Shown here in pieces: positions 11,501 to 60,425 of a stretch of DNA of 64,000 nucleotides. Position 1 is the first letter of the stretch; every line of letters begins with the position of its first letter. The stretch comes from Ylistrum balloti (lineage: Eukaryota). The translations under genes and the position numbers were made by a program. Location: positions 1,364,001-1,428,000 of the forward strand of contig NW_026781965.1 of the NCBI RefSeq assembly GCF_031769215.1, given 5' to 3'. The notes under the pieces were generated by a model that made no database searches, was not told where the DNA came from, and saw only the letters and a program-made list of their open reading frames with translations.

Positions 11501-14500
11501 GGAGCATTGAAAGGTGAGTAGCATATAAAATAGGATTAACCCTATATATATGTGTGTAAACATATAAAATCTACAGTTATCACACAGTAAATAACTGGCA
11601 TCACAGAGTAAATAAACCAGCTATCACACAGCAAATAACTGGTATCACACAATAAATAAACCAGTTATCACAGCAAATAAACCAGTTATCACACAGTAAA
11701 TAAACCAGTTATCACAGTGCAAATGAACCACTTAAATTATCACACAGCAAATAAACCAGTTATCAAAGAGTAAATAAACCAGTTGTACAGCTAATAAACC
11801 ACTTATCACACAACAAATAATCCAGTTATTATACAGTACTAGGTATCATACAGTACTAGGTATCACACAGCAAATAAACCATTCAAAGTGTTACAGCCCT
11901 TTTTAAACCTAACTGTTATGGACACACACAGTATTGTTGGACATTCATGTACAGATTTATTCAGTACCTATATGAATAGCAAAAACATACAAACATTGAT
12001 GGTTCTGGGTTGCGTGATAACCACAGGTCGATAGAAATACTGATACCTGAACTGCCTTGCAATGATTTATCACTGAACAAAATTAGGAAGTATCTATCCA
12101 GAAATTAGTGAATGCTGGCAATTATATTGACCTACTGACCCAACTATATTGATTTTCAGTTGAAATATAAGCCAATGTTATTTCACCATTATATTGTGCT
12201 TTAATAAGCCCACCTCCTGAATTTGAGTAAGAATTGGTATATTTTGGTCCCATTTGATTATTGCGAAGAAAATATGGTATACAATTTGTTAGTATGCAAT
12301 TGTTGAGTGATTTGATACCATTAGTAATAGGTTATGGTAAGCACATAGTTAATTAGTTCTTGCAGACATTAATGTCAAGTTTCAAGCCTGATATGGTGCT
12401 CCAACTAACATTTTGCATTTATTATGTAAACATTAGTTCTGGAAACATTTTTATTAATAGGTGGAAAGAAAACACCTCTGAAGAAAGCACAAACTCCAAA
12501 TCCTAAGGCGAAAACACCCAAGATGGAAGCAGCCGACCTGAAGACAAAAACTCCAGTTCTTAATCAGAATGGAAAACCTACTACAAAGCAACAAACTCCA
12601 CGTTCAAAAGTGAAAACTCCTGCTAAAGTAGAAACTTCATCCCTGAAGGCAAAAACTCCAAACCCAAACGTAAATACACCTACAGTGCAAACTCCAGCTC
12701 TGAAGACAAAAACACCAGCTAAAAAAACTCCTGCTAAAGTAGAAACTTCATCCCAGAAGGCAAAAACCCCAAACCCAAACGTAAATACACCTACAGTGCA
12801 AACTCCAGCTCTGAAGTCAAAAACACCAGCTAAAAAAACTCCTGCTAAAGTAGAAACTTCATCCCTGAAGGCAAAAACACCAGCTAAAAAAACTCCTGCT
12901 AAAGTGCAAACTCCAGTCCCTACCACAAATGCTCCTGCTAATGTAAAAACTCCAACATTGAAAGGCAAAACGAGTGCAAAAGTGCAAACCCCAATTTCAA
13001 AGACAAAAACACTGGCAACTAAAATGTCAACGAAAGGCAGGACCATGTCTTCAAAACAGAAAATGGAAGTGGAAGATTCTGATGAAAGTGAAGAAAGTGA
13101 TGCAGATATCGATTTGGAAAATATAGGTAAGCTTTGAGGGACACATAAATACATTTTCTCTGATTTTTTTTCTTTGTGAAAGCCAAACTTTGTACAAAGA
13201 ATATTTGGTAATTAGAAACAGCACTTCATTGAAATGAAATATTGTCTTTAAAAATCTACCAGAAGTAAAAAAATTGAAAAAATAAGAGACTTAACCTCCA
13301 TGTTAAGACCAGTTTGATGGTGGTGTCCAGTAGATGAAGGTCTTCCTGAATTGTAGTTCCTCTTTATGAGCAATTGATAAAAAGAAAAAGATTACTGCTA
13401 GACAAAAAATATGTCCTCATTCAAAGTGAATTTAAAATATCCTTCAAATTTATGTTTTGATATGTGTACAGTATAATTCATGACAAGGACATGTAACAGT
13501 AAGTATTTCTCAAGTTTTTGTTGAAAAAAGGAACAAATTTTCAACGAATAATCTTTAAGGATTTTTAAAAGATTAAATTCAGAATTGAAAAAAAAAAACA
13601 CACACACATTATGAGAGTTGTTTTTGCTGGATTTGTAGGATTTAAGTGATCTGTATGAATGAGTACTATGATACATTGACCTGAATGTAGAATGGTACTA
13701 TTTACTTCCCAACAAGACGATAAGTTGATGCCAAATGAAATTGATGTTTCTGCTCTGAATCCTGACTTTGACTAGAGATACCACAATAATTTTATTTTAT
13801 TACAGATTCTGAATGTGATAAGCAGAAGCATAACCTCAAAGTTTGAACTATTTAACAAAAGATTAAAAAGATAAAACATTCTAATTAGATGCATTCCTCC
13901 ATTTACTTTTTTAAAGGCAAAGCAAGACTAGAAGAAGACAATAGTGAAGAAGAGGAAGATGATATAGGTATGTACCACAGATATTAAAACCCTCTTATCT
14001 GTTAGTTTATATTAGTGTCCAATTACTTACCTCAACTAAACCTGAGGACTAAGGTAATCTAAGCACTATCTGTTGGTTCACAAAGGTTTTTTACTTTTGA
14101 CAACTCTTTCAATATACAATATCTACATACCTTCTGGTCTGACACTGGTATTCAACTCTCAGATGTGGGTCTAAAGGACTATTTGGCCTTATTTGGACAA
14201 TGTTGAAAATTTTACCCTTGATCTCTATAGAATGAGATATACATCCAGATATTGAGTGCATGTGTCTTGAAGCTCTAATTGATTAGCTCTACTTTGATTA
14301 TTGCTTTACAGTCTAATAAAACTGCAAGATATAAGAAATACTAGATATAAGTGTATCAATATTTTAATAGGAGTTTCTGAATATCTGCCTCAGCTTGAAA
14401 GTTCCACTTTGATAGTACTAAAATGAAATCGAAATGATAACCCACCTTTTATAGAGATTATATCCGTTCTGTCGGTATGAAGTAAACAGTATCGAGGTCC

Positions 14501-14607
14501 AATTGTTTCATTTTACAATATCGTTCTTTCAAATACAACATAATCAAGGATCAACTAATTTATAAAATTTCTCTTCAAATTAGACATGGAAGATGATGAC
14601 TCCCTCG

Positions 14608-14638
<31 letters not shown>

Positions 14639-17600
14639 AGAGGAGGAAGATGATGATGACGATGATGAAGAGGAGGAGGAAGAAGAAGATGATGATGAAA
14701 AAGAGAAAGATGAAAAGGAAGAGGACAAAGAAAACACAGGTGAAATTAACAGCATCTGCTCATTAAAAAAAAAAGAGCTAGATTGCAGCATATTCCATGG
14801 AAATAGAATGGATACCCAAATCTATAGGGTATTTCCTGAACATATAATAGATATATCCTGACAACGAATTGTCTGTTTTCCCATTAATAAAGTTGCTTTG
14901 TTGTCCATCTTTTCAATAATGCAAACATTTCTGTTCTGTATTAAAGTGTAAATATATGCCCAAGACGAGAGCAGTTAGCATATATCAGCATCGTGATGTA
15001 TCGTGATTAGAAAAGCAGGACAAGGATATTGCGGAAAATTTTAAGATTGGCGATATCGCCACAGACAAAAAGAAGTAAGGACGTGGCTTTTAGATGTATT
15101 AGATTTCTTAATATATTAAATATTATTTTGTCTTTCAGTGCAAGGAAATTCATCTATGAAAAAACAGGATGTGGAAGGGAATGGTAATGGTTTTTGTCAA
15201 ATTGTGATATCACAAAAACAGAAGTCTAAGTGTAAGGTTGTTGATATGTTAGATTTCAAGTCAGTTTGATAGAATTTAGCTGTCACAAATGTCTTCAAGA
15301 CTTAAATGTATCTTGATAGTGTGTTAAACAGAATCTTTTCTTCCCAGATTTCAACATTCTAAGACATGTTTTCTAAATCTCAGCAGAAAGTGAAACTTAA
15401 ATGATATTATGATAATTATCAGCACATCGTGACACGCATATATATATATATATTTTTGTACATTAACTAAATTCACAGTTTGCATTTGATCTGGTGCAAA
15501 CATTAGCTTTTGACCCCTCACTCCCAACAGTATAGATTGACAAGTCTAATTTGTAAGAAAATGTTTTAATTTGTTTTTCAGTTGGGACAAATATGTCTCT
15601 TAAGAAACAGGACATGGATTGGAAAGGTAAATTATTATAGATTGAAAATCTGCTGATACACTGTCATACGTTTTTCTACATGTAATGAATATTTCGCAAA
15701 GATATAAGTAAAAAGTAGAAAATAATCCAGCTCTGTCATAGGTTAAGAAATTGCTTTGTTACAAACTAGTTCTTGGAAATAACTTCTTTTTTTTTCATTT
15801 TCATTTCATTCGATATGTTAACTTTTCCATTACAGTATACTTTCTATGCAACTCATAATAAAATTTGGCTATTTTTAGAGGATCTTGACAATAGGTCATT
15901 GTTTGTGAGAGATTTCCCAACAAAAACAAAGGTGGAAGATCTAAAAATGTTGACAAAAGATGTTTTAGAAGTTTATCCTAAACCACATCTTGGCTGCAAA
16001 AAAGGAAGTTTAAAGTAAGTAAATTATGGTGTCACATATAAATATAACCCTATTACATCAGTGATATGATTGTGTGTGTGTGTGTGTGTGTGCGTGTGTG
16101 TTATGGTTTGCATGTAAATTGTTGTAGTCACAACCCGTCCCTTGCCATGCACTATTTTGAGCCTACAATGACCTCAAACTTGTTATTGTGGGTCAAGCAA
16201 TAGTGCTACATCAATACCGACTCTGATTTTGTAGACATTTTCATGGTGTTTACAAATGAAAGTCAGGTGACAGATGAATTATCGAATGAATTTTCTGATC
16301 CATGGCTGATTCTAAATAGATCATTGACACACAACTGAAAAGTTTCAGAATAAAAGAAGACCTGGGATATTTTATCAACAACTTTAATAATGAATTAATA
16401 CATGGTGATTCGATTCTGAAACATTTAGCATAAATCATAATTATAAATGTATTTGACATGAACACAATGCCATACAACACACCCTCCACACATACACAGT
16501 TGTATGGCACAGTTTTATTATAATGATATGATGAAATTACATCCTTGTACACACACATTGGATACGTATTATTTACAGAGATTGTATGGCACACAGACAT
16601 ATCTATATATGGATCAGTATTTACATATGTTTACCTCCAACATTTTCAGGAAACGAAAATTTTGTGTCAGCATGCCTATTGAAATTTATATAAGGTCATC
16701 AGAACATTTGTAAAAGAGAATTGCTTGAATCTGATGTCATGTGTCATGTTGTCAGTTTTGGTATAATAGAGATGCATCAGTATGTTGATGTGTGTGTGTG
16801 TTTGTGTGTGCGTGCGTGTGTGCGTGCGCGCGCGCACGTTGTAGTCACAGCCCGTCCCTTGCCATGCACTATTTTGAGCCTACAATGACCTCAAACTTGT
16901 TATTGTGGGTCAAGCAATAGTGCTACATCAATACCGACTCTGATTTTGTAGACATTTTCATAGTGTTTACAAATGAAAGTCAGGTGACATACATGTTATA
17001 TGTATATTTCAATTAGGGACATTGAGTAACATATACTCTGTTTTGGTGAAAAATAAGAAAATCCATTTGTTTAACAAAAATATAGTTTCAGACTGTTATA
17101 CAGATCATATGGTATAAAAGACGTGCACATTTTTATTAGGCAATTTAGATAGCTGATTATCTGAAAATGGTGCCTAGACTTATTAAATGGTTTGGATAAG
17201 CAGTTATCTGTATGATAATGTGATTGGATGAGGTGCAACTGATGAGCAGTTAGAATTTGAGTGGCTAATGCACAAAGGTGTGATGTATCTGGTCTCCTAT
17301 CCTGTCAGATAGGTTTACCATAATAACTAGTCAGTGGTGTAATTGTCTTTCTATCAAGACAATATGCAAATGGTAATTTTTGATGTTTAGCTAATGTAAA
17401 GCTTTGTGCTGACATTTCCATTTAAAGTACTGTGTCTTTCCTGAAACGGATGCATCAGTATGTTAATATGATCAAAGTTGCACTATTTTGAGCCTACAGT
17501 GACCTCAAACTTGTTATTGTGGGTCAAGCAATAGTGCTACATCAATACCGACTCTGATTTTGTAGACATTTTCATAGTGTTTACAAATGAAAGTCCGGTA

Positions 17601-20600
17601 ACAGATAGCTGGCATACTCCTTAGCGTACATACAAATTTTCAAGGAGGTACTAAATATTTTCTCTTCATCTGATGCTTCAGTACTTATTAAAATCGTTTT
17701 TCATGTTATGATGTTAATTAATCTTTGCTATTGTCACTTCATGATGTCAAGCAGATGAAAAGTAATAAAGGAAAAAATATGAATATATTTGAAACTTTTG
17801 CAAAACTGTCTGTAGAAAGATACCGCAATCTGTCTGTATTTTTGTGAATATTATTGTGGCATCATGTTGAGAACCAAAGTTAGTCATCTTACAAATATTT
17901 GGCGTTTACACTCTCTCACCACAGCTAAGTCTGTTCTGATAAAGAACAAGGTTTAGACATCTGGTCCTACAATCTTTTGCTTTAATGTATAGTTGTGTTG
18001 TAATGATGTATTGTGAAAGTTGACTGGTTTTCATTGTTAGTGATTGTACCCCACTGTTCCTCAGCTTAGGGGCAGTAAGGTGACAAATATAAGGGCAGTA
18101 AGGTGGCATATATAGGGGCAGTAAGGTGACAAATATAGGGGCAGTAAAGAGACACATATAGGGGCAGTAAGGTGACATATATAGGGACAGTATGGTGACA
18201 TATGTAGGGGCAGTATGGTGACATATATAGGGGCAGTAAGGTGACACATATCGGGGCAGTAAGGTGACATATATAAGGACAGTATGGTGACACATATCGG
18301 GGCAGTAAGGTGACATATATAAAGACATTATGGTGACATATATAGGGGCAGTAAGGTGACACATATAGGGGCAGTAAGGTGATATATATAAGGACATTAT
18401 GGTGACATATATAGGGGCAGTAAGGTGACATATATAGAGGCAGTATGGTGACATATTGTAGCAGTTCAAATCAGAAATGACCTTGGCCCTTATTTATAGT
18501 CACTAGACTAAATTGATTGAATAAAAATGTGGTAGAAACTGTTTCCATTTTGTTGATTATGTTTAGTCTGGAATATTGGCAAGATTATCAAACAATTTGT
18601 TTAAATGAATTTGAATTACCATAGCTCCACATTGAAAATCAGTTCAGTATAGGAGAAAGAAAATGAATGCCAAGTCAATGATACAGTCCTCTTTGGTCTC
18701 TTGTTTATGGTTAATTGTGTTGTAATGCACATGTACATGGAGGAAAATGCCTGTTTTGGTTGAATTTTCTTTTTCCAGATTCTATTAAAGTCACATTTCT
18801 TCTTTCAAACCTTAAATCAGCAGTGTGATTTCTGATCAAACTATTTCCATTTTTTTGAAATTACAGATGGGCCATTTTGCGGTTCAAGAATGAAGAAACT
18901 GCAATAAAAAACCATAAGTTGCTGAATGGAATGAAAATTGAGAATAACAAATTATATGCTGACTTTGTTGGCGCAAAGAGCAAGCATGCCACTAGAACAT
19001 ATAAAAATGGTAAATATTACATGTATGATTAAATTTCTTTCATATTATCAACATTGACTTGCTTCAAACTTGTAAACTATGTTTAAGTGAAAAAATGACA
19101 TGAACTTGTACATAAATTTCTGCGTATGTGTATCCTTGAGGCAAAACTTTTATTTATTGTTTTATAATTTATCAACATTTAACATGATAACAGTATACCT
19201 GTAGTGTTTACTTATCATTAATTAAAAATCAAATTGTATCCTTGAGGCAAAACCTTTTTTTGATTCATCTTATACAAATTTGCTTTAGCCATGAAAACAT
19301 TTCAATGAAGTGTAGATAATTTATGGAAATTTATTAGAGATATTCTACTTTGATATTAAGTATTCATAGTTATACATAGTTGTTGTGTGTTCTTCTATTC
19401 CAGATCCTGTGGATCCTTTATCGTTGTTTATAACTGGATTACCACTTACATGGAAAGAACTTGATCTCAGTAGATTATTTCCAAAAGCGAAATCTGTGCG
19501 TTTTCCTGCAACTAAAAAGCATAAGAAAGGAAAGCGAGATATAACAAATGCTGTAGGGTAAGTGGACATGTTAGTCCTGGAATTTCTATAAACACCATAC
19601 AATTCATGTTTGTAAACTTTAAAAACTACTCTTTAATAAATGTGTTAACTCTCTATGCCATGTGATACATTACTATATAGAATACCTTAGGTATATCGTG
19701 CATGTCGAAAGTTCTTGTTCTGATGAGCACATTATAAGTAATTAGATGGTGGGCAGTTCACATTACCCAGCATTAGAAGGCACTGTGTCTATTCTGAAAA
19801 AAGTTATCACTATTTTTGAGAGATACTTAATGGAACTTTCCTAAATTTCTTGTGAAAGTTCCCGTTGGCCCCTTCTTGTATCCTTTTCATTTTGAGTGTG
19901 ATCATAAAAACAAAATGGATGACAGGTGGCCATCTTGGATGTTGACTATGGAGATTGTTATTGCTGTATCTTGAGAAGCACAGAATGGATCATTCTCAAA
20001 TTTTGATTTGTAGCCTCCTCTTGATCTCTAGTTTTACTCTCTTGATTTTGAGACCATCTGAAAACCAAAATGGCCAAGAGATTGCCTTCTTACATTTTTC
20101 ACGATATTGATATCTTGAAGTATTGGAAGTATTTTTCTTTAATTTTTATTTTGTGGGTTTCACTTGGTCCCTAACGGAGGCGTATAAGGTCAATTTGGAA
20201 ATTTGATCAGGAAAACAAAAAAAGGTCCTAGAGGCCACTATCTTGGCTTCGAGTGTTTAAGATTATTATTGCTATTTCTTCAGAGATATTCTTGAATTTC
20301 ATATAAGGAGCGAAAAGTAGACAAGAACAGAAAAGAAATAACGAGTTTCAATTAATAAAGAAAAAATGGTGGATGCTGAGATCCCTCTGGGATCACTGTT
20401 TGTAAGACAAATCCATGATTACTGACTTAATGTTGGGATCACTGTTTGTAAGACAAATCCATGATTACTGACTAATTGTTGGGATCACTGTTTGTAAGAC
20501 AAATCCATGATTACTGACTAATTGTTGGGGTCACTGTTTGTAAGACAAATCCATGATTACTGACTTAATGTTAGGATCACTGTTTGTAAGACAAATCCAT

Positions 20601-22834
20601 GATTACTGACTTAATGTTGGGATCACTGTTTGTAAGACAAATCCATGATTACTGACTAATTGTTGGGGTCACTGTTTGTAAGACAAATCCATGATTACTG
20701 ACTTAATGTTTGGATCACTGTTTGTAAGACAAATCCATGATTACTGACTTAATGTTAGGATCACTGTTTGTAAGACAAATCCATGATTACTGACTAATTG
20801 TTGGGGTCACTGTTTGTAAGACAAATCCATGATTACTGACTTTTTGTAAGACAAATAATTGTTGGGATCACTGTTTGTAAGACAAATCCATGATTACTGA
20901 CTTAATGTTAGGATCACTGTTTGTAAGACAAATCCATGATTACTGACTAATTGTTGGGATCACTGTTTGTAAGACAAATCCATGATTACTGACTTAATGT
21001 TAGGATCACTGTTTGTAAGACAAATCCATGATTACTGACTTAATGTTAGGATCACTGTTTGTAAGACAAATCCATGATTACTGACTAATTGTTGGGATCA
21101 CTGTTTGTAAGACAAATCCATGATTACTGACTTAATGTTGGGATCACTGTTTGTAAGACAAATCCATGATTACTGACTAATTGTTGGGGTCACTGTTTGT
21201 AAGACAAATCCATGATTACTGACTTAATGTTGGTGTGATTGTGTTCCAGGTATGGATTTGCTGACTTTGCAAGTGAAGCTGAAGCTAAAGCTGCACACGA
21301 TAAAATGCAAGGAAAATCAGTAGAGGGTAAAACACTAGTGATTATGTATGCCTTCAAGAGAGATCCCAAGACTACCAATAAAAGGAACAAAGAGGTGGAC
21401 AGCAGCTTGGATGGTGAGAACAATAATCGCATAATAGTCTAGGGCCACATAGCACACTGACTTACGTTTAGTCAAGGACACTTTCTATAAATAGAATATT
21501 GATATTGTTACTTTCGATAGAAGGTGACATGTAATGGAGTTACTGGGACCTCTATCAGGCCTTTTACTTTTGACGTCAAGTGCCGACTTCGAATGAAACA
21601 CTGATTTCTGAACAGCATATTTATCATAAGATTTGTTTTCAGTCCTTAGACATGAGTATAATTGGTATAAGTAACTGTATTATGACTGGAGTAGAGGGAG
21701 CATTTAGGGGTTAAATCTATGATTATCATATAAACAAGTTTTAATCGCAATATTAGGTGTAATGGTAATACAATAATTTTACGAGATGTGATGCCTACTT
21801 ACTACTTAGCCTTCAACTACTGAGTTGGAGTATAACTTTTAAATCACACCTGAGTGCTGTAGCTTAGATATTTGAATGTAAATGAAGGAAACTGATGAGA
21901 TCAAACTTAGGTCGAATTTTTTAAGTTCAACTGGGTACTGCATTGATACAGGGTTAAATTATGTCTTCATATGTGGGATAGCAAGTGTGTTAAATGTTTA
22001 TATGAGAGACTCATACTGTTTGAAGTAGGTCAAACTTTCTGTATATTGAGGATATGTAAGTTGAAAAGCTTATTGGAGGGAACAAGAGTAATGAACTTGT
22101 CTATATCATATGAAATAACCTACTAATTACGCTGCAAAGTATGAATTTACTGACTTATGATCTTGATCCTCTGAATAGAAATAGGAATAGGGGTAGGGAA
22201 TAGGGAAAGGTCTCCAAATATACAAACATTGTTTAACATCCAAAAAAAAAAATCAAAATCCTGCTGATGGATTCAAAAATATGAATATCATAGTAATTCT
22301 GTAATACAGTCTGTAGCCTGCTTGCAAGTAAGTCAAATATCTCTTGTAATAAGCAACTTACAAAATCGTCAAGATTGAACTAAACACAATAAAATTGATG
22401 GTTTTTTGCATAACAGACTTGAGTATATTGGAACCAAACATCAGTAATGTGAATGCCATTTAGATTGGAGTGCAGTGACCAAATACAAGATATAAATTTA
22501 CTGTCACATACCTGAATGTATTGTAAGTAAGTTATATGAATTTTTCACCAGTTGAGGACTTATTTTTAACAGAAGTACTTTCTTTATTCCTCATTGAAAT
22601 TTCTCCTGAATAAATATTTTATGATTGATCCCAATTTATGAGTGTATGAATCTAGGTTATCATTCAAAGACGAGTTATTCTTGTTCTATACAGCTCCAGC
22701 TGCAAAGAAGGCTAAGTTATCAAAACAGGTAGAAAATGAAGATGATGATGACGACGACGACGATGATGATGATGATGATGATGGTCCAGCAGCCAAGAAA
22801 GCTAAGTTATCAACAAAGCAGGGAGAAAGCGATG
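8598..22834 (+). CDS. Divergent nucleolin-like RNA-binding protein (TP/TPAK repeat region, acidic tracts, 2 RRMs, acidic C-terminal repeats); 3' end lost in the N gap
   Basis: 14 phase-consistent exons: 8598-8627 (MVPKKNSRAK), 10437-10541, 10778-10819, 11483-11513, 12461-13126, 13917-13967, 14584-14739, 15139-15183, 15582-15626, 15879-16014, 18867-19009, 19404-19557, 21250-21413, 22694-22834+, about 636 codons. RRM1: SLFVRDF...KWAILRF...LYADFVGAKS. RRM2: SLFITGL...GYGFADFASE...VEGKTLVIMY. Confidence 0.8.
10080..10248 (-). mobile_element. tRNA-derived SINE with a conserved central domain
   Basis: The minus strand reads an A-box-like AGGCGCAGCAGT, a B box GGGTTCAATTCCTGG (10183-10197), then GGGTTTTCCCTGGGTACTCCACTTTCCTCC, which is the conserved core motif of V/Meta-type SINE superfamilies. 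Confidence 0.75.
11572..11880. repeat. Degenerate minisatellite of about 23 bp (tatcacacagtaaataaaccagt)
   Basis: About 13 diverged tandem units, read directly. Confidence 0.8.
16147..16275 (+). ncRNA. Box H/ACA snoRNA, SNORA50/SNORA76-like, copy 1
   Basis: Hairpin GCACTATT/AATAGTGC with a 12-bp upper stem, H box ACATCA, a second hairpin, and ACA 3 nt from the end. Both pockets lie 14 nt from their box. The 5' pocket pairs with 18S GCTTG-UC-TCAAA. Sense and intronic in a ribosome-biogenesis gene. Confidence 0.85.
16864..16992 (+). ncRNA. Box H/ACA snoRNA, SNORA50/SNORA76-like, copy 2
   Basis: Near-identical to copy 1, with one loop substitution; boxes and pockets intact. Confidence 0.85.
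17478..17606 (+). ncRNA. Box H/ACA snoRNA, SNORA50/SNORA76-like, copy 3
   Basis: Same 129-nt element. Differences are an A-U to G-U stem change, a loop base, the bulged base and the base before ACA; flanks have diverged. Confidence 0.85.
18066..18458. repeat. 23-bp minisatellite (ggggcagtaaggtgacatatata)
   Basis: About 17 tandem units; source of the SPYCPY ORFs in the track. Confidence 0.9.
19900..20260. mobile_element. Interspersed repeat fragment carrying ggccatcttg motifs
   Basis: Shares ggtggccatcttggat-type motifs with 30030-30560; family not identified. Confidence 0.4.
20389..21232. repeat. 46-bp tandem array (gggatcactgtttgtaagacaaatccatgattactgacttaatgtt)
   Basis: About 18 near-identical units ending 17 bp before the splice acceptor of the exon at 21250. 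Confidence 0.95.
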
Positions 22835-23006
22835 NNNNNNNNNNNNNNNNNNNNNNNNNNNNNNNNNNNNNNNNNNNNNNNNNNNNNNNNNNNNNNNNNN
22901 NNNNNNNNNNNNNNNNNNNNNNNNNNNNNNNNNNNNNNNNNNNNNNNNNNNNNNNNNNNNNNNNNNNNNNNNNNNNNNNNNNNNNNNNNNNNNNNNNNNN
23001 NNNNNG
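22835..23006. other. Assembly gap (172 N)
   Basis: A run of n between a low-complexity acidic coding exon and a satellite array. Confidence 1.
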
Positions 23007-59982: not shown

Positions 59983-60425
59983 CATCATACAGCTATTTCG
60001 CCCTTTTAGAACTTGTCAGCGATGCTACATCATACAGCTATTTCGCCCTTCTAGACCTCGTCAGTGTTGCTACATCAGATAGCTATTTCGTCTCTCTAAA
60101 ACTCGTCAGTGATTCTACATCATGCAGCTACTTCGTCCTTCTAGAACTCGACAGTGTTGCTACATTATACGGTTATTTCATCTCTCTAGAACTCGTCTGT
60201 GATGCTAAATCATGCAGCTATTTCTTCCTTCTAGAATTCGTCAGTGTTGCTACATCAAGCAGCTGTTTTTTTCCTCTAGAACTCGTCTGTGATATCATAT
60301 CATGCAGCTATTTCGTCCTTCTAGTACTCGTTAGTGTTGTTTCATCACGTAGCTGTTTCTTTGCTCTAGAACATTTGTACATTTGTGCATCATGCAGCTC
60401 TTATGTCCCTCTAGAACTCGTCAAT
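59983..60425. repeat. 45-bp degenerate tandem repeat, about 10 copies
   Basis: Consensus catcatgcagctatttcgtccttctagaactcgtcagtgttgcta. Confidence 0.9.

Follow-up and report, generated by a model that had tools for sequence, protein, structure and literature searches.

In vertebrates the nucleolin gene NCL hosts the small nucleolar RNAs (snoRNAs) U23/SNORA75 and U20/SNORD20, in mammals in separate introns (PMC3035437). Several snoRNA genes, often tandem isoforms, lying on the sense strand of a single host intron are known from rice, and intron clusters are likewise known from Drosophila (PMC2780460); single-intron clusters are also attributed to a 2004 report (J Mol Biol 341:669) where it is cited in PMC5932544. 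In ACA50/ACA62, as in chicken GGgACA3, it is the 5' hairpin that has been assigned the guidance of position 34 of 18S rRNA (PMC2653536). Here we describe a related arrangement in the scallop Ylistrum balloti, in a window of 64,000 nt (the whole stretch analysed; contig NW_026781965.1, positions 1,364,001 to 1,428,000, forward strand, with coordinates counted from its first letter). A first-pass annotation, made from the letters alone, had noticed three copies of a 129-nt element in one intron of a nucleolin paralogue. Our sequence-based analysis confirms the prediction of a box H/ACA snoRNA whose three intact copies share an intron of a nucleolin-like gene. We hold it to be very probable that these represent three tandemly duplicated genes for one snoRNA, transcribed within that intron. 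The copies are laid out as follows.

16147-16275, + strand: snoRNA copy 1, 129 nt; H box ACATCA at 16208-16213, ACA at 16270-16272; 162.5 bits with covariance model R1.
16864-16992, + strand: snoRNA copy 2, 129 nt; H box at 16925-16930, 3' hairpin at 16932-16986, ACA at 16987-16989.
16866-16872/16917-16923, + strand: lower stem of the 5' pocket of copy 2, with guide strands at 16873-16877 (UUUGA) and 16911-16916 (CAAGCA).
17478-17606, + strand: snoRNA copy 3, 129 nt; H box at 17539-17544, ACA at 17601-17603.

All three copies lie on the host strand within intron 16015-18866. Their annotated starts at 16147, 16864 and 17478 proved exact by alignment and by a repeat finder, which returned one direct-repeat family with three copies (D2: 16121-16272, 16838-16989 and 17452-17603; spacings of 717 and 614 nt). 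The spacers between the copies measure 588 and 485 nt. Probes of 20 and 32 nt taken from the element hit three sites only in the window, where shuffled sequences lead one to expect 0.02 and 0, and the broader covariance model R2 found no fourth copy there.

On the + strand each copy folds with a minimum free energy of about -44.5 kcal/mol (z -5.8 to -6.6), a stability that none of 200 shuffles equalled, and the fold of the - strand is weaker (z -2.3 to -3.1). In element numbering, the 5' hairpin consists of a lower stem at 3-9/54-60 and an upper stem at 16-26/36-46; the hinge carries the H box ACAUCA at 62-67, and the 3' hairpin spans 69-123 and is followed by ACA at 124-126 plus three bases in all three copies. 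The ACA directly abuts the 3' stem, and the layout fits both the ANANNA form of the H box and an ACA placed three nucleotides from the predicted 3' end. The proposed order of hairpin, H box, hairpin and ACA+3 is borne out by the folds, the boxes and the covariation described below. The minimum free energy fold shuts the 5' pocket because its strands are partly self-complementary, and this in turn is because the 18S target is nearly palindromic; the Rfam consensus of SNORA50 draws the pocket open, its strands likewise being partly self-complementary.

The 129-nt cores vary at seven positions (1, 22, 99, 119, 123 and two tail bases 3' of the ACA), and the copies are pairwise 97-99% identical as RNA, with boxes and guide strands invariant. 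Position 1 precedes the first stem, position 119 (A, A and C in copies 1, 2 and 3) is a bulge, and the stem variants keep standard pairs (A22-U40 to G-U, A99-U93 to G-U, G123-U69 to A-U); the variants G22, C119 and A123 of copy 3 are all structure-compatible. The earlier claim that changes are confined to structure-tolerated sites holds insofar as all of them are paired, in a bulge or at the ends, but its "loop base" is position 99, which belongs to the closing pair of the apical loop. Similarly, the base before the ACA, position 123, does vary, but is better read as pairing with U69.

In order to follow the element beyond the scallop, we ran model R1, built from the three scallop copies, over loci of host-gene relatives. 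It matched once in the chiton Liolophura sinensis (L123:11893-12031, 35 bits, E 2e-6; Rfam SNORA50 34.4 bits), where the RNA folds at z -5.6 and carries the boxes ACAUUA and ACA, and once in the limpet Lottia gigantea (L125:8005-8132, 50.4 bits, E 4e-10; Rfam SNORA50 49 bits, E 3e-6), where the H box is ACAUCA, but AUA replaces ACA. The chiton orthologue lies in the intron 11201-12131 between the exons ...GKKGCRG and FGFLEFADEK, which is the position at which the scallop intron splits the first RNA recognition motif (RRM1). The limpet shares the host gene, but here the orthologue occupies an intron that interrupts RRM2 at the corresponding place (...KKGALHG/FAFVFF). Scallop, chiton and limpet have conserved the H box, the core of the lower stem and the strands of the 5' guide, the last of these without any change. 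Within the five-sequence alignment of these animals, which was fitted to the structure of the model, 19 of the 38 pairs have changed on both sides and 98.9% of the cells are paired, compared with one to four such pairs in a control in which the partners were slid by 1-3 columns. By this comparison, the predicted snoRNA has been resident in the same host gene since early molluscs.

Copy number was assessed from the contigs of four DNA-type runs (two studies, two organism labels) aligned to 15700-19100. In all four samples contigs bridge each copy into its own flank (16215-16771, 16956-17529 and 17570 onward), and no contig in them runs from the element into foreign sequence. Collapsed repeat contigs reach about 2-3 times the depth of the flanks (27.6 versus 11.5-19 in X1, 68.4 versus 24-37 in X2, 33.3 versus 15.6-18.5 in X3 and 20.3 versus about 10 in X5). 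Contig depth is a crude measure, but a dispersed family should exceed the flanks by much more than this. These data suggest about three copies per genome, and the element is therefore not a short interspersed nuclear element (SINE) or a miniature inverted-repeat transposable element (MITE). The sole solid polymorphism within a copy is an A to T change at 16265 found in all four runs; it hits the bulge base that is C in copy 3. Sample X3 additionally carries a 13-nt deletion (16990-17002) that begins right after the ACA of copy 2 and replaces the three tail bases, leaving the box intact.

The flanks of the copies were said to diverge, which is true of the downstream side, where no similarity above chance was found among the copies; upstream, remnants are shared.

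16770-16863, + strand: 5' flank of copy 2, with about 93 nt in common with copy 1 (16054-16146); short motif, GT/GC microsatellite, 26 nt.

Copies 2 and 3 have in common a 22-nt motif, GATGCATCAGTATGTT(G/A)AT, which contains GTATGT and lies at 16770-16791 and 17449-17470, with a weaker version at 16058-16075; it may be a remnant of duplication, or else a processing or cryptic-splice signal. GT/GC microsatellites (16070-16113 and 16786-16838) stand directly 5' of copies 1 and 2, and their length varies between samples, as seen from loose contig ends at 16121. Taken together, remnants shared upstream and none downstream fit an old local segmental duplication.

If the element were instead a short mobile sequence, whether a SINE, a MITE or a retroposon derived from a snoRNA, which folds well and came to lie three times in the intron by chance, it would also be repeated and sharply bounded, with flanks that differ right after ACA+3, and retroposons of H/ACA snoRNAs do exist in mammals (PMC1687206). 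The many dispersed copies which the first-pass annotation had named as the sign of such an element were, however, seen neither with the probes and model R2 in the 64 kb nor in the contig depth of the four samples, which stays at 2-3 times that of the flanks with no contig leading into foreign sequence. Neither a poly-A tail nor terminal inverted repeats nor a target-site duplication is visible at the copies; the common upstream flanks point to local segmental duplication, and the chiton and the limpet each hold a single orthologue in the same gene, with covariation. A SINE or MITE was thus rejected on copy number and orthology, and a mobile origin of any of these kinds appears scarcely conceivable to us.

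Another view is that only one or two of the copies work, the rest being young duplicates, or copies homogenised by gene conversion, that are unselected or unprocessed. The upstream 26 nt and the microsatellite are shared by copies 1 and 2 at high identity, as in a recent duplication or conversion tract, and chiton and limpet manage with one copy. Against this stand the intact boxes, guide strands and stems of all three copies, internal differences that are all paired or in a bulge, downstream flanks that have wholly diverged while the RNA has stayed 97-99% identical, and the presence of three copies in four animals from two studies. We regard partial function as possible, though rather unlikely.

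The guide potential of the element was analysed on 120 eukaryotic 18S loci from metagenome contigs, retrieved by a sequence pattern, and 23 full ribosomal DNA (rDNA) units were scanned without bias along their length for every U-N that is preceded by letters complementary to the 3' guide strand and followed by letters complementary to the 5' guide strand. The retrieval pattern is one that we presume mammals do not match, and no retrieved contig was taken as human. For the 5' pocket, UGCUUG-UC-UCAAA is the sole site with 11 Watson-Crick pairs and no others, and it is present in 23 of 23 rDNA units; a match of this kind arises in 0.05% of shuffled rDNA sequences. Six plus five Watson-Crick pairs flank the unpaired U34-C35 of 18S, and about 112 of 116 retrieved 18S loci contain the segment AUGCUUGUCUCAAAG. 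Between the first guide base and the H box there are 13 nt, in keeping with the customary distance of about 14-16 nt, and top target and spacing are the same in scallop, chiton and limpet. The earlier proposal of a guide for 18S U34 of the SNORA50/76 type is therefore upheld by the sole 11-bp target, by the guide letters of the Rfam family and by orthologues with identical guides. On these predicted pairings, the 5' pocket should direct pseudouridine formation at the equivalent of 18S U34.

Several points weigh against the main reading of three genes for one such guide snoRNA. The targets were tested on the rDNA of other eukaryotes, not on scallop 18S, and a search for sequencing runs containing the stretch returned DNA-type contig runs only and no RNA run. 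The pair counts come from three lineages and from an alignment that leans towards structure because it was fitted to the model, although the margin over the control is nonetheless large. In the fetched loci of the heterobranch snails Candidula (a partial gene) and Elysia, no homologue was found by R1, R2 or Rfam. The identity between the copies could partly reflect gene conversion and not selection on each copy. Finally, no Rfam family matched in the window at gathering thresholds, and the scallop copies score slightly higher with SNORA46 than with SNORA50.

The Rfam scores come from permissive scans. Between 16000 and 17800, SNORA50 (RF00407) aligns over its full length with all copies at 31.6-34.7 bits (E 6e-4 to 3e-3), and SNORA46 (RF00404) does so at 35.1-39.9 bits (E 6e-5 to 6e-4); in a permissive scan of the whole window the two are still the sole snoRNA matches. 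The Rfam check that had been suggested for SNORA50/76 accordingly gave nothing at the gathering score, but full-length sub-threshold matches to SNORA50 on all copies. The gathering score of SNORA50, 90 bits, is reached neither by the scallop nor by the chiton (34.4 bits) or the limpet (49 bits). A snoRNA of the SNORA46 type, which would guide 18S-649, has the best scallop Rfam score on its side (35-40 versus 32-35 bits). Its guide letters UUUAAaCC/GGuUACGC are, however, unmatched, and many pairs in its alignment, which rests on the lower stem and the general shape, are flagged as non-standard. In the limpet, SNORA50 scores 49 and SNORA46 30.4 bits; in the chiton SNORA50 alone is reported, and the unbiased scan of the 5' pocket gives the U34 site only. 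Since likeness to SNORA46 lies in the lower stem and overall shape and the difference in the guide strands, we consider it a resemblance of form only; membership was rejected on guide sequence and seems to us very improbable. In the SNORA50 alignment, the consensus guide letters UUUGA and CAAGCAA are identical in the scallop RNA. Judged by its guide strands, the scallop RNA is a predicted, sub-threshold new member of the known SNORA50 guide family, the molluscan counterpart of SNORA50/SNORA76.

The 3' pocket behaves differently. That of the scallop reads CUGAUU/AUGA, whereas the vertebrate SNORA50 guide for 18S-105 is AUAACU/UUUAAA, and the scallop pocket is unable to pair around U105. Three candidate targets were obtained. 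With UCAU-UA-AAUCAG, at about U100/101, the pocket forms 10 Watson-Crick pairs (P of about 0.004 for one register). With UUUUAU-UA-GAUCA, near U206-229, it forms 11 pairs, two of them G-U (P of about 0.015). The third candidate is UUUCAU-UA-AUCA, at about U970-990 in the retrieved loci. The chiton 3' pocket (L123:11960-12031) pairs with 18S UAACCA-UA-AAC in 8 of 10 rDNA units, a target unlike that of the scallop. A search for a 3'-pocket target common to scallop, chiton and limpet gave none, the pockets differing in each. The structure of the 3' hairpin has thus been kept and its guide has not, and therefore any 3' target would be lineage-specific; the site at about U100/101 is one reasonable candidate for the scallop, not an established target.

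The host gene and the parts of it that surround the copies are the following.

10443-22900 (approximate), + strand: host gene, nucleolin-like; exons upstream of the RRMs encode TPAKK-type basic repeats and acidic runs, and the two RRMs are followed by a tail rich in acidic residues.
15879-16014, + strand: upstream exon, first half of RRM1 (...RSLFVRDFP...KKGSLK).
16015-18866, + strand: host intron, GT at 16015 and AG at 18865-18866, splitting RRM1 just 5' of RNP1.
18867-19009, + strand: downstream exon, second half of RRM1 (WAILRFKNEETAIKNHKLL...).

That this intron splits RRM1 had been stated before, and both the splice limits and the frame hold, with the reading frame joining across it as ...KKGSLK/WAILRFKNEE. 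Spliced peptides of 81-87 residues were used as queries against Pfam and solved structures. The joined RRM1 passes the Pfam cutoff with 23.6 bits and the second RRM with 36.8 bits (both RRM_1); among solved structures RRM2 matches nucleolin best (46.9 bits), the next protein scoring 32.8. The closest full-length relatives are annotated as "nucleolin-like" (Lingula-type, chiton), followed by fish nucleolins. A Lingula protein tried as a relative of the host gene proved to be an unrelated Ran_BP1 gene that had matched only via an acidic stretch. No match was obtained in a word search with the exon-bearing open reading frame 15773-16015, an exhaustive protein search with the RRM2 exon gave neither an orthologue from a bivalve nor any relative with more than 50% identity, and word searches with the proteins of two relatives (one of them as its RRM region) returned no bivalve among their results. 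Canonical nucleolin has four RRMs and a glycine- and arginine-rich (GAR) tail, whereas in the host protein only two RRMs were seen, the tail being acidic and not of the GAR kind as far as it was seen, with a stretch of N breaking its 3' end; with this difference in mind, the label "nucleolin-like paralogue" is fair. The N stretch, at about 22840-23000, interrupts the acidic C-terminal exon.

Upstream of the host gene, and head-to-head with it, lies a longer second RRM gene. The same arrangement of a long RRM gene of nucleolin type and a short two-RRM gene is found in the chiton (L123:1-14201) and the limpet (L125:1-8932), and the paralogue pair is therefore old within molluscs. In the host intron, 3' of copy 3, a minisatellite of 23 nt (at least 16 units, 17998-18525) breaks the resequenced contigs, which vary there. 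Some contigs of X1 and X3 leave the reference at 15806 and 18537 into 255 nt of unlike sequence, which suggests a structural variant or an alternative haplotype around the intron. Elsewhere in the window, 60035-60085 on the - strand aligns weakly, though over the full length of the model, with the type III hammerhead ribozyme (30.8 bits against a gathering score of 48.5; E 0.014 for the whole window).

How such an intron might be processed can be outlined from the established biology of intronic H/ACA snoRNAs. Each copy would bind dyskerin, Nop10, Nhp2 and Gar1 on the nascent intron in a co-transcriptional assembly of the ribonucleoprotein (RNP). After splicing and debranching, the ends of the RNP would shield the RNA from exonucleases, so that trimming would stop at its borders, and the mature RNA of about 129 nt would guide the U34 equivalent of 18S to pseudouridine. 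Exonucleases that degrade the intron from its two ends would be halted where copy 1 begins and where copy 3 ends, and full yield from three copies for this reason implies cleavage of the spacers; release of all three RNPs would thus need a cut in both the 588-nt and the 485-nt spacer. Alternatively, only some of the copies may mature per transcript. The triplication itself is most readily understood as an expansion of dosage that arose in the scallop lineage, chiton and limpet each having one copy of the element.

Taking host and guide together, we posit, as a whole that we ourselves hold to be quite doubtful, that the paralogue and the guide RNA form a unit kept together since before the split of chitons, gastropods and bivalves. 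In this unit, the snoRNA would have switched between two equivalent RRM-splitting introns and multiplied in scallops, and its role as a snoRNA host coupled to ribosome-biogenesis expression may be at least part of the reason why the gene has been retained. Release of the three RNPs would then use a putative animal endonuclease that cleaves the spacers, and an 18S pseudouridine at about U100/101, which is not known from vertebrates or yeast, may be guided by the 3' pocket of the scallop RNA. The old association with the host fits hosting as a reason for retention of the gene, but does not show it.

Compared with described systems, the scallop RNA shares with vertebrate SNORA50/SNORA76 (ACA50/ACA62, chicken GGgACA3; RF00407) an H/ACA layout about 130 nt long, UUUGA...CAAGCA as the letters of its 5' pocket, the lower-stem core GCAC...GUGC and a full-length cmscan alignment. 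It differs in that the mollusc scores stay far below the gathering score (32-49 versus 90 bits), in having three copies in one intron and in its host, which is CNOT1 or a non-coding gene in vertebrates and a nucleolin-like gene in the scallop. The guide for 18S U34 is hereby extended from vertebrates to molluscs, and its occurrence in both would therefore make the guide, and probably the modification, of early bilaterian age.

With vertebrate NCL, the locus has in common a ribosome-biogenesis gene of the nucleolin family with rRNA-modification guides in its introns, and U23, too, has its site (U93) within the 5' domain of 18S. NCL, however, carries other snoRNAs, one per intron, whereas the scallop host is a short two-RRM paralogue beside the canonical four-RRM nucleolin. 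The first-pass annotation had taken one snoRNA per intron as the usual state, which is true of vertebrates, but rice and Drosophila have intron clusters (PMC2780460). The scallop resembles these clusters in having several snoRNA genes per intron on the host sense strand. The multi-copy arrangement is thus already known from flies and plants, and the scallop triplication does not overturn current understanding; what is modestly new is how old the association with the host is, that the snoRNA has changed introns and that its 3' guide has diverged. What sets the scallop apart from rice and Drosophila is that a mollusc has triplicated one ancient guide whose single-copy orthologues sit in the same gene elsewhere, a clean case of host-gene fidelity over about half a billion years, combined with a change of intron and with tandem expansion in one lineage.

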